Shown: positions 52,857-56,772 of the stretch, piece by piece
Position numbering within the stretch: position 1 is the first letter of the stretch
Layout of the letters: the number at the start of each line of letters is the position of its first letter
Assembly: GCA_977030845.1 (NCBI GenBank)
Contig: OZ365112.1
Coordinates: forward strand, 5,766,001-5,830,000
DNA: 64,000 nucleotides
Reading direction: 5' to 3'
Source: Fimbriosthenelais zetlandica
Taxonomy: Eukaryota
Translations under genes and position numbers: made by a program
Notes under the pieces: model-generated
What the model saw: only the letters and a program-made list of their open reading frames with translations
What the model was told of the DNA's origin: nothing
Databases searched by the model: none

Positions 52857-55800
52857 TTATCGTGTTGCCATGGAGACTTGCCATACTCGGATGAGGTTGT
52901 CTGTGTATCCGGCAAACAGTGTTTGGCCGTCAGCGGACCAAGCGAGGCAGATGCACTGAGGAGGTTCAGCCTTGGATGTAGGGCTGATTACCTCTTGACG
53001 AAGCTCATCAACCACAACCTTTCCTTCCAGATCCTGAAAAAGTGGAGCAAAAAATTGTAATTTCCAATTTTGTTTTTAATTTTTTTTTATTTAGAATATT
53101 TATACAGCCAAATTAAGAGGAGTTCACTAGGCTCACGGGGCATATAATTATATTACCAGTCATGATTTTCAGCCTATGGCTGTGTTAGTGCAGGAACTAA
53201 TTTTTAATGTGTTGGAACTACTCGTTTTATCTCGAGAAATCGTCATAGAACCAGAAGCCTTCAGATTTGGCTCAGAAGCTAATAAATGACAATGAATGTA
53301 ATCACAGGATTCCAGTTTTAAAAGAATCTAAAATTTAATTTAATACAGCAATATTTAAGCACGGAACCATAGAAACCTATTTCCTAACAGTTTTGGTTGT
53401 AGGCCAAGAAAGAGTATCTCAACTACTGTTTTAATTTTGTTTTAAGAAATCCTCATAGGACTAGGAGTCTTCAGATTAGGCTCAGAAGCTAATACATGTC
53501 TGAATAAATATAATCACAGGATTCCAGTTGTTTTAAAAGTATCTAAAAGTTAATTGATTATTCAATACAGGATTATTTATTCACAGAACCATAGAAAGCT
53601 ATTTCCTAACAGTTTCGGTTGTAGGCCTAGAAAGAGCAACGAGTATAGAAAGAAGTCTTCTATACTCGTTGGAAAGAGTATCTAAACTACTGTTTTAATT
53701 TTATGTTAAGAAATCCTCATAGGACAAGGAGTCTTCAGATTTTGCTCAGAAGCTAATACATGTCTGAATTAATATAATCACAGGATTCCAGTTATTTTAA
53801 AATTTAATTCAAGAAAAAATTTATTTATTTTAAGCAAAGAAACGTGCAAACAGTTTCGGTTGTAGGCCTAGAAAGATAATCTAAAGTACTGTTTTAATTT
53901 TTTGTTAAGAAATCCTCATAGGACTAAGAGTCTTCAGATTTGGCTCAGAAGCTAATACATGTCTGAATTAATATAATCACAGGATTTCTTTTATTTTTGA
54001 ATTAAATAATATTTGCTCCGTTATTTCATGACAGTTTTGGTTGTCTTTGACTAGCTATACTTTTTATACAGGGTGTTGGGGAAGACCAATATTAATAACA
54101 TTGACCAACTGTACCTGTCTAAAGATTTAATAAAAAAAAAAAAAAATACTTACCCAGATCTTGATGGAGGGTCCTGTGGCAGCACAGAGCCAGTAACGGT
54201 TGGGGGAGAAGCAGAGAGCATTGATCATATCTCCACCGTCCAAAGTGTACAGGTGCTTACCCTCATTCAGATCCCACAACATAGCCTGACCGTCCTGAAA
54301 ATCAAACCAACACCAGTGATTAAGCAATATATACAGTGACCAAGGATTTGAAAATTATGAGTTTCAAATTTGATTTAAGAAAGTCAATTCAAGGTAATTC
54401 TCAAAATTGTCTTGTATTTAGTTTATATATGCGAGGTTAATATGCGTTATTGTAAATATTTGTTATAGTTATCTACTATAAAATTTCGAAAATCTTTTGT
54501 TAAATGAAACTTTAACTAGGATAAATAGAAGATTAAAAATTACCTTGCCACCAGAGGCACAGAGGGAGCCATCGGGGGAGACGGTGACACAGTTGAGGTA
54601 TCCGGTGTGGCCGATGTGGTTGGTCTTTAGTTTACAGTTGGTAAGGTTCCACACCTTGACCAGCTTTTCCCAGCCGCAGGAGACGATGATTGGGTTCTGT
54701 GTGTTGGGCGAGAAACGCACGCACGACACCCACTCCCTGTGGCCCTCATCCTGCAAGAGAAAAAAATATTTTATTTATATGAAGTTTGAGGTGAAGACAG
54801 CTTCCTTCATATCCCCCCCATGTCCAATTTATGCAGAGAATAAATCCCCCCCCCCCCCCCCCCTTCTGAATGAAACCCTGAGTGCCTACCTGGATGGTGT
54901 ATTTGCAGACACCGAGTGTGTTCCACAGCTTGATGGTTTGATCCCTGGATCCAGACACAATCTGACGGTTGTCAGCAGAGAAAGCTACACTGAGCACGTC
55001 CTTGGTGTGTCCGACAAAACGGCGGGTGGTGGTGCCACTGAGAAATCAAAAATCACATTATAATGTCCATTCGTTTACAAAATGTTACCTGGCTCATGTA
55101 AAATATAAATTTTATGACCTCATAATTGCAGGACATCTGTCTTCATAGATTTACTCAATGTGTCGTTAATCATCGGCCTTGATATTTTCATCTTATTTTC
55201 ATTTATTTTGTGGTTTGAGATTTAAAACATTTGGTTAAAATAGATTATTATTGGACCTCATAATTGCAGGACATCTGTCTTCATAGATTAACTCAATGTG
55301 TCGTTAATCATCGGCCTTAATATTTTCATCTTATTTTCATTTATTTTGTGGTTTGAGATTTAAAACATTTGGTTAAAATAGATTATTATTGGACCTCATA
55401 ATTGCAGGACATCTGTCTTCATAGATTAACTCAATGTGTCATTAATCATAGGTCTTGCATTCATCTTCATTTTTGTAGGTATGATACTTTACAACTTATG
55501 TTATCTCACAGACAAAATTATGTTTTATTTTAAACAAAATATTTTAAACATTGTCAAAATATAAATAAATAACCTCATAATTGCAGGACATCTGTCTTCA
55601 TTGTGAAACTCAATGTGTCGTTAATCATAGGTCTTCCATTTATATTTGTGGGCTTGATATTTTACAAATTATGGTCTCAAACATTTAGAATGCATTAAGT
55701 TGGTTTAAAATAAAGATACATACGTGCTAAGGTCCCATAGGCGCAGAGTATGGTCCCAGGATCCTGAGAGAGCAAACTGGCCATCAGAGGACATGACAAC

Positions 55801-56772
55801 ATCAGAGACGAAGTGCCCGTGGCCACGGAGAGCCTTCTGGGGGATGCCATAGTTGGTCTCATCGCGAGTGAGCTTCCACATGATGAGGGTCTTATCTGTA
55901 TTGTAGAAAAGAAATTCATGGTTATACTTCGAGATAATACCAAATGAATACCAACAATGCAGCATTAGATTTTAACCACCATTACACGTCTGAAATTAGA
56001 TTTTAGTAGATTATGTTTATTTCTACACGTGATCAGACCTCATAATTGCAGGACATCTGTCTTCATCGCATAACTCAAAACGTCTTTAATCATAGGTCTT
56101 GGTTTTCGTAGGGTTTATTCCGGAAATATTGTACCGGTACCGGTAAGTGTGTGTATTTAACTTAAGGTTAAGCTTGATCTCTTATCAATTTATTCTCCAC
56201 AGGCACAGATAGCACTTTAGTCTTAGCAGCTCTGTCATTAGATTTGACACTAATTATGTCATTATCAAGGGGCCCTACATTTCTCAGTATATCAGTATAT
56301 CGACAAGGTATGATGCTCAATACAGAAAGCACATTGTTCAAGGTATCATTTGAGGCAATCTGCATCATGGGAGGCTGGACTTTGACAGTCAACATTTGAC
56401 AGCACAGCCATGACAGTCAAATGTGTATTGACAGTTATTGACACCGATACACACAACCAAAACAAGCCGACTTTTAAGGGAAAATCTAATGTCAGCGAGC
56501 ACCTAACACGAGTGAATATCAGCAAAATCATTACACCTGTTCTATAAAATGAAACACTAACTGGGAAATTGAAAAATAACATTGACAGACGACTGTGACA
56601 TATTGTAAACATGGCCCCGTCTGTACGATCGTGGCCAACATGTCATCCACGGAGATAGCTTACCTCTAGAGGCGGATAAAATCATATCAGGGCGTTGTGG
56701 GGTTGTTGCAATTTGAGTCACCCATCCTGCATGACCATGGAGGGTTCCTCTAAGTGTCATTTGTTCCGACAT
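52857..56772 (-). CDS. RACK1: Receptor for activated C kinase 1 (40S ribosome-associated WD40 protein), 6 coding exons, 317 aa
   Basis: Exons 56772-56664 (109), 55895-55724 (172), 55037-54890 (148), 54750-54544 (207), 54294-54154 (141), 53033-52857 (177); 954 nt, all GT-AG. Translation [39 protein letters not shown]...[20 protein letters not shown] is near-identical to animal RACK1. Confidence 0.98.
53238..53311 (-). ncRNA. Box C/D snoRNA, intron-5 family, copy A (diverged guide)
   Basis: Same architecture as copies B-D (C box GTGATTA, D' CTGA, C' CTGAAG, D ATGA), but the guide and 3' stem carry substitutions. Confidence 0.5.
53448..53523 (-). ncRNA. Box C/D snoRNA, intron-5 family, copy B; D' guide complementary to 18S rRNA
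   Basis: AATCC-T-GTGATTA...CATGTATTAGCTT-CTGA...CTGAAGA...ATGA-GGATT. Terminal stem of 5 bp. The guide CATGTATTAGCT pairs with the conserved 18S sequence AGCUAAUACAUG. Confidence 0.78.
53712..53787 (-). ncRNA. Box C/D snoRNA, intron-5 family, copy C
   Basis: Same boxes, terminal stem and 18S guide as copy B. Confidence 0.78.
53911..53986 (-). ncRNA. Box C/D snoRNA, intron-5 family, copy D
   Basis: Same boxes and guide. The terminal stem extends to AAGAAATCCT/AGGATTTCTT (53907-53990). Confidence 0.78.
55116..55179 (-). ncRNA. SNORD96: SNORD96-like box C/D snoRNA (5.8S rRNA Gm75 guide), RACK1 intron 2, copy 1
   Basis: C ATGATTA, D' TTGA, C' ATGAAGA, guide TGTCCTGCAATT (identical to the vertebrate SNORD96 guide and complementary to 5.8S AAUUGCAGGACA), D ATGA. 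Ends 78 nt from the acceptor. Confidence 0.85.
55254..55317 (-). ncRNA. SNORD96: SNORD96-like snoRNA, intron 2, copy 2
   Basis: Near-identical to copy 1, at a 138-bp period. Confidence 0.85.
55392..55454 (-). ncRNA. SNORD96: SNORD96-like snoRNA, intron 2, copy 3
   Basis: GACC-T-ATGATTA-ATGACACA-TTGA-GTTAATCT-ATGAAGA-CAGATGTCCTGCAATT-ATGA-GGTC, with a perfect GACC/GGTC stem. Confidence 0.88.
55572..55633 (-). ncRNA. SNORD96: SNORD96-like snoRNA, intron 2, copy 4
   Basis: Boxes and guide are invariant; the D'-C' spacer has diverged. Confidence 0.85.
56036..56098 (-). ncRNA. SNORD96: SNORD96-like snoRNA, RACK1 intron 1, copy 5
   Basis: GACC-T-ATGATTA-AAGACGTT-TTGA-GTTATGCG-ATGAAGA-CAGATGTCCTGCAATT-ATGA-GGTC. 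Spacers differ while boxes, guide and stem are conserved. Confidence 0.85.

Follow-up and report, generated by a model that had tools for sequence, protein, structure and literature searches.

The introns of the RACK1 gene of Fimbriosthenelais zetlandica raise the question of whether a small nucleolar RNA (snoRNA) with altered C and D boxes can still be a working methylation guide, and how such an alteration arose. The locus lies on contig OZ365112.1 (assembly GCA_977030845.1), within the 64,000-nucleotide stretch from position 5,766,001 to 5,830,000 that was analyzed here as a whole (the window). A first-pass annotation of the window had claimed that nine intronic box C/D units all carry the C box RUGAUUA with the D box AUGA, that C6 and D1 form a pair within the kink-turn, that the two changes compensate one another, and that they reflect a real small nucleolar ribonucleoprotein (snoRNP) structure. 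Our analyses indicate, with high probability, that the nine units are functional intronic box C/D methylation-guide snoRNAs with a U-A pair at this position, and that the pair is a derived change at the level of families, with no lineage-wide shift in box preference.

Results

Nine units in RACK1 introns with a U-A pair at C6–D1

All nine units were found where the annotation had placed them, on the minus strand. They lie in introns 1, 2, and 5 of RACK1 and fall into two families: family B, with one copy in intron 1 and four in intron 2, and family A, with four copies in intron 5. The order of elements in family B is GACC-U-AUGAUUA, the C' box AUGAAGA, the guide UGUCCUGCAAUU, the D box AUGA, and GGUC, its 3' part reading AUGAAGA-CAGAUGUCCUGCAAUU-AUGA-GGUC, with GGCC and GGUU as stem variants. 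In family A the order is AAUCC-U-GUGAUUA, then CAUGUAUUAGCUU directly before the D' box CUGA, then the C' box CUGAAGA, and finally AUGA-GGAUU. Thus, the C' core UGAAGA, which had been reported as common to both families, is indeed present in each. Every unit has a terminal stem of 4 to 9 base pairs (bp) directly flanking the boxes, offset by one base in copy A1 relative to the other family A copies, and the family B stem pairings (GACC/GGUC, GGCC/GGUC, and GACC/GGUU) are maintained through G-U or compensated changes.

The C box of all nine units matches six of the seven positions of the consensus RUGAUGA, with the UGA core intact. The D box keeps the GA core of the consensus CUGA; its first base is changed, but is complementary to the changed C6. 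The C6–D1 pair is therefore U-A in 9/9 units, where canonical snoRNAs have G-C. At the level of sequence, the kink-turn can be read as G3·A4, A4·G3, U5·U2, and U6-A1, and in every copy the C-box A7 can additionally pair with the U preceding AUGA. The changed pair is the Watson–Crick position adjoining the U·U pair, kink-turn position 4b-4n, and both box changes are G:C to T:A transversions. The pairing of C6 with D1 is consistent with PMC6461891, and with U-A at this Watson–Crick position in every copy, the claim of a compensatory change held. In the window, TGATTA-N35-60-TATGAS is matched 11 times versus 1.07 expected, and at least 11 occurrences were obtained in 0 of 100 shuffles; 9 of the 11 are the nine units. 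The copies are duplicates of one another and amount to one or two independent events instead of nine.

Guides, targets, and conservation

To identify ribosomal RNA (rRNA) targets, the units were paired against the ribosomal DNA (rDNA) located in the same genome. The family B guide forms 12 perfect bp with 5.8S positions 70 to 81 in all five copies, and the duplex ends directly at AUGA; 5.8S G74 lies at D+5 only when AUGA is taken as the D box. As evidence for the boxes, this geometry outweighs the pattern count in the window. Methylation of this residue (Gm74/75) is conserved in fly, human, Xenopus, and Arabidopsis (PMC11014333). Family A forms 12 to 13 bp with 18S positions 160 to 172 by way of the canonical D' box CUGA, selecting U164, with one mismatch in A1.

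Two side observations concern these rRNAs. Copies B2 to B5 (55120-55628), but not B1, contain UUAACGACACAU between the C box and a UUGA that could serve as a D' box. This segment can pair with 5.8S positions 28 to 39 over 12 bp, including two to three G-U pairs; it could be a weak additional 5.8S guide, or the match could be due to chance. In the rDNA, a 5S rRNA gene (L009 5223-5341, contig C34) follows the 28S gene ∼660 bp downstream, in the same orientation, which links 5S to the rDNA unit.

In a sequence search, the family B unit was present at no other locus of the 447-Mb assembly. A genome-wide search for its guide directly before NTGA gave the five RACK1 copies and, beyond them, a single match on contig C25 that has no C box. 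The U-A snoRNAs would therefore be the sole guides for 5.8S G74, if that methylation exists here. The corresponding genome-wide pattern for the family A guide, which is too short, gave 89 matches versus 40 for the control and was uninformative beyond the four known copies.

All nine copies keep boxes, stems, and guides while their flanks diverge. In the family B alignment, the invariant columns lie inside the RNA body and the flanks of B1 and B2 are diverged or unalignable; the sequence search aligned only the body of B1. The covarying stems, the D+5 guides, and the confinement of conservation to the body predict functional snoRNAs, in line with the proposal of a real snoRNP structure. The snoRNAs would be released from the RACK1 introns, and, with the tandem G·A pairs recognized by Snu13, the three-base bulge, and the terminal stem intact, the usual snoRNP assembly would be expected. 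Family B would then direct fibrillarin to 5.8S G74, and the D' guide of family A would bring it to 18S U164. The analysis shows the anatomy and the targets of the units, that the 5.8S guide is unique in the genome, that C6–D1 covaries across families, and that the U-A state is derived; that the nine units are expressed, assembled into snoRNPs, and active in methylation is inferred. An intronless L7Ae-domain open reading frame on contig C28, considered as a candidate Snu13, was rejected as RPS12-like.

Family B and SNORD96

Family B resembles SNORD96 (U96a/b; RF00055; the 5.8S Gm75 guide of RACK1/GNB2L1) in its host gene, its D-guide core UCCUGCAAUU, and its target, 5.8S G74/75. It differs from SNORD96 in having AUGAUUA/AUGA in place of RUGAUGA/CUGA, in its five copies, and in lacking the 28S D' guide of the Rfam consensus. 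Family B is the SNORD96 orthologue; the vertebrate host of SNORD96 is likewise RACK1. The Rfam consensus, which confirms the 5.8S guide, is a double guide, with the D' guide CCAUCUUUCGG to the 28S site of the RPS8 family described below and the D guide to 5.8S. In this genome the two guides stand on separate snoRNAs, the 28S guide in RPS8 and the 5.8S guide in RACK1.

An Rfam scan of the nine units gave none at the gathering score, and RF00055 produced no match even at E ≤ 10. The suggestion that consensus-based finders could miss these genes is therefore borne out in that Rfam misses all nine. However, canonical invertebrate SNORD96 orthologues also score below the RF00055 gathering cut-off (25 to 28 bits versus 43), and the variant boxes thus are not the sole cause.

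The U-A pair is derived

Metagenome contigs were scanned with TGATNA ... TGTCCTGCAATT-NTGA, leaving both box positions free. The scan recovered about 32 SNORD96 orthologue copies, all AUGAUGA/CUGA, with the layout GAC-U-GAUGAUGA ... UGUCCUGCAAUU-CUGA-AGUC. Most of the contigs carry RACK1 exons, as identified by tblastn, and additional copies in other RACK1 introns were likewise all canonical. None of the U-A matches in the scan had a terminal stem, and four contigs reached through RACK1 protein fragments contained no SNORD96-like guide. Nine matches of the form UUGAUUA...CUGA with a GCCC/GGGC stem were set aside as unrelated, having neither a purine before UGA nor a RACK1 context. Because the RACK1-intron orthologues elsewhere are all canonical, the U-A pair is derived in the lineage of this genome. 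The finding that would have spoken against a special status of the U-A pair, its being common in orthologues across animals, was looked for and did not materialize in these ∼32 invertebrate copies. On one metagenome contig with RACK1 (L121 1853-1918), a copy with SNORD96 termini carries a different 15-nucleotide guide, to large-subunit rRNA (LSU) position 3467; this has the appearance of guide turnover in another invertebrate's RACK1 array.

Covariation of C6 and D1 across the genome

The boxes of snoRNAs in the same genome were collected by a scan anchored on rRNA complementarity beside any NTGA, with C6 and D1 unconstrained, combined with Rfam; host genes were located through Pfam searches of the genome. 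In total, 63 copies were tabulated together with two canonical RPS8 copies, after register corrections. The family states are G-C in 15, U-A in 3, G·A in 1, and U·C in 0 (Fisher p = 0.004). The C6–D1 pair thus shows natural covariation across families within one genome.

The G-C state (UGAUGA/CUGA) comprises about 48 copies. It includes U14 (four copies), snR60/Z15 (five), SNORD36, the 18S-G103 guide (two), and SNORD57-like (five), as well as guides to LSU A3236, A3365, and 2636 in RPS3, SNORD34-like (three), SNORD33/32 (seven), and an LSU 2235 guide in RPL13A, a guide to LSU 883 (eight copies) in RPL4, and SNORD83 and SNORD46 in RPS8. The D box AUGA occurs in 4 of ∼18 families: A, B, SNORD24, and a subgroup of the 28S guide family in RPS8 (LSU 1087; ACCAUCUUUCGC-CUGA). 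Three of the five RPS8 copies have AUGAUUA/AUGA, one of them readable in an alternative register, and two have AUGAUGU/CUGA. The U-A pair therefore is not confined to RACK1. The tabulation of boxes that the first-pass annotation had proposed, run on about 18 families, thus revealed U-A in a third family and, on the other side, a G-C majority. The machinery of this animal would seem to tolerate U-A alongside the canonical pair.

Mismatched states were also seen. SNORD24, with four copies in RPS3, combines the C box RUGAUGA with the D box AUGA, an uncompensated G·A that may be an intermediate state, and in the LSU-A3236 family a single copy, with AUGAUCA/CUGA, shows a C·C mismatch. Elsewhere in the survey, the SNORD57-like copies (18S A99 guide; L124 4041-4685, contig C13, about 18.72 Mb) have the C boxes CUGAUGA, RUGACGA, and GUGAAGA with the D box CUGA; because these C boxes differ, the U·U position of the kink-turn varies among paralogues. 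As a rule, intronic snoRNAs of this genome stand in tandem arrays (L132 2733-7818; L133 1600-3800; L125 6091-9749): one RPL4 28S guide is present eight times, the RPL5 locus has six SNORA73 copies, and RPS3 contains 13 or more C/D units.

Host gene and feature coordinates

The identity of the host gene is supported by a protein homology search, in which exon 4 was 86 to 89% identical to RACK1 proteins. Downstream of the snoRNA in each family A repeat unit is a conserved segment, GGCCUACAACCRAAACUGUU on the minus strand, which could be no more than a portion of a recent duplication unit. Coordinates are collected in Table 1.

Table 1. Coordinates of the RACK1 host gene, its nine box C/D units, and related snoRNA copies; positions are those of the window unless a locus (L) and contig (C) are named
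Feature	Position	Strand	Remarks
Host gene RACK1	52857..56770 (approximate limits)	minus	six coding exons, read from exon ORFs (open reading frames)
SNORD96-like copy B1, intron 1	56036..56098	minus	stem GACC, AUGAUUA, C' AUGAAGA, 5.8S-G74 guide, AUGA, stem GGUC
SNORD96-like copy B2, intron 2	55571..55633	minus	3' stem GGUU, G-U pairing with GACC
SNORD96-like copy B3, intron 2	55392..55454	minus	family B layout
SNORD96-like copy B4, intron 2	55254..55316	minus	5' stem GGCC, G-U pairing with GGUC
SNORD96-like copy B5, intron 2	55116..55178	minus	family B layout
Family A copy A4, intron 5	53911..53986	minus	AAUCC, GUGAUUA, D' guide to 18S U164, CUGA, CUGAAGA, AUGA, GGAUU
Family A copy A3, intron 5	53712..53787	minus	family A layout
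Family A copy A2, intron 5	53448..53523	minus	family A layout
Family A copy A1, intron 5	53238..53311	minus	most diverged; one D' guide mismatch; boxes unchanged
Conserved family A repeat segment	53390-53420, 53610-53640, 53850-53880, 54030-54050	minus	no recognizable boxes
RPS8 28S guide, U-A copies	L130 3611-3673, 3805-3865, 4017-4077		contig C21
RPS8 28S guide, canonical copies	L130 about 5115-5185, 5322-5393		contig C21
SNORD24 copies	L125 9498-9560, 9687-9749; L126 1387-1449, 1593-1655		contig C37, RPS3

Discussion

Origin of the U-A pair

A double transversion has no wobble intermediate, so that any path from G-C to U-A leads through G·A or U·C. Such a path is made plausible by the G·A of SNORD24 and by the redundancy of tandem arrays. 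A separate issue is whether the path was taken once. One snoRNA that was already U-A, and on which new guides arose later, could be the ancestor of families A and B and possibly of the RPS8 U-A copies. This history is compatible with the functional interpretation given above, and we hold it to be possible but less likely than not. Besides their host gene, families A and B have in common the rare double transversion, the C' sequence UGAAGA(C), and the 3' sequence UAUGAGG, and family B shares the termini AAGACC...GGUC with the RPS8 U-A copies. In addition, the Rfam SNORD96 consensus carries guides both to 5.8S and to the 28S site of the RPS8 family, so that family B and the RPS8 family could be halves of one ancestral double guide, and the metagenome relative L121 has a SNORD96 backbone with a different guide. 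However, outside the boxes the global alignment of A and B is no better than that of box-preserving shuffled controls (p = 0.47 for one pair and 0.19 averaged, that is, 0.2 to 0.5), and the shared ancestor of A and B put forward in the first-pass annotation is not demonstrable on this basis. The terminal match between B and the RPS8 U-A copies ranks within the top 1% among 641 family pairs, but unrelated families match at their termini over the same length (the G103 with the A3365 guide; B1 with U14), and we therefore rejected it as proof of common descent. The interior of the RPS8 U-A copies, moreover, is like that of the canonical RPS8 paralogues and unlike family B.

A more specific history, which we consider unlikely, is that the U-A pair marks a single lineage from a double-guide, SNORD96-type ancestor that seeded the 5.8S, 18S U164, and RPS8 28S guides; alternatively or additionally, U-A snoRNPs may assemble at a different efficiency and form a functionally distinct subclass. 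If true, the rare box pair would be a natural tag for tracing guide reprogramming.

Alternative explanations and points of doubt

The odd boxes could instead be pseudogene mutations accumulated in introns by decaying, nonfunctional copies. Multicopy arrays do tolerate defective members, such as the LSU-A3236 copy with its C·C mismatch, but we judge this very unlikely for the nine units, where boxes, stems, and guides are kept in 9/9 against diverging flanks, the compensatory change is present in every copy, and a canonical SNORD96 for the conserved 5.8S site was found nowhere else in the genome. The lineage-wide shift of Snu13/NOP58 preference toward UGAUUA/AUGA that had also been proposed could draw on the AUGA D box in 4 of ∼18 families, but it is hard to credit when 15 family states with UGAUGA/CUGA, including U14, SNORD33/34/36/46/83, and snR60, emerged from a scan that constrained neither C6 nor D1. 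Least credible of all is that other sequences serve as the functional boxes and AT-rich introns produced RUGAUUA/AUGA by coincidence, since, although chance TGATTA...ATGA pairs with 5-bp stems do occur (about six guide-less candidates in 164 kb), the family B units have no CUGA or UGAUGA at all, their guide ends exactly at AUGA, and the stems flank exactly these boxes in 9/9 units.

Several points nevertheless weigh against our interpretation of the nine units as functional guides with a family-level change. The family A target, 18S U164, is to our knowledge not a methylated site in model organisms, and the D-side guide region of family A differs between copies; this spacer is probably not a guide. 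The box tally covers about 18 families at eight host loci, a part of the snoRNA set. An A/U-only stem II might assemble less well: in the account of Watkins 2002 given in PMC6770171, stem II changes in U14 cut the binding of NOP56, NOP58, and fibrillarin in mammalian extracts. In oocyte experiments described there, unlike those in extracts, stem II changes were tolerated.

Significance and comparison with known systems

The variant does not indicate an altered machinery. It offers a natural test of the stem II requirement, in an animal whose universally conserved 5.8S methylation seems to depend solely on U-A versions. In RPS8, a single guide exists in both G-C and U-A copies, which are matched pairs for binding and activity assays. 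For annotation, a guide-anchored scan found units that Rfam missed, and snoRNA searches in non-model invertebrates should permit covarying C6/D1.

Among known snoRNAs, the Rfam consensus of U54 (RF00206), GUGAUU...AUGA with a D' guide, resembles family A, which scores 23 to 24 bits versus a gathering score of 40. The guide differs, and the likeness lies in boxes and architecture, with homology not demonstrated. A literature word search for UGAUUA returned nothing relevant. Work on archaeal sRNAs, as cited in PMC6461891 (Kuhn, Tran and Maxwell 2002), indicates that single changes weaken L7Ae binding and that the double change restores it; those mutants belong to an in vitro archaeal system, whereas eukaryotic NOP56/NOP58 may need a stricter stem II. 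A published precedent is the nucleomorph of Guillardia theta, where snoRNAs GtNM-R12 to R14 have AUGAUU with AUGA, interpreted as compensatory (PMC6461891). The double change is identical, but those snoRNAs are nonhomologous and belong to the reduced genome of an algal endosymbiont, whereas the units described here are in an animal nuclear genome with a canonical majority. Variants of this type are known, and the U-A pair is not new in principle; here it is found in an animal SNORD96 orthologue and in two other families.

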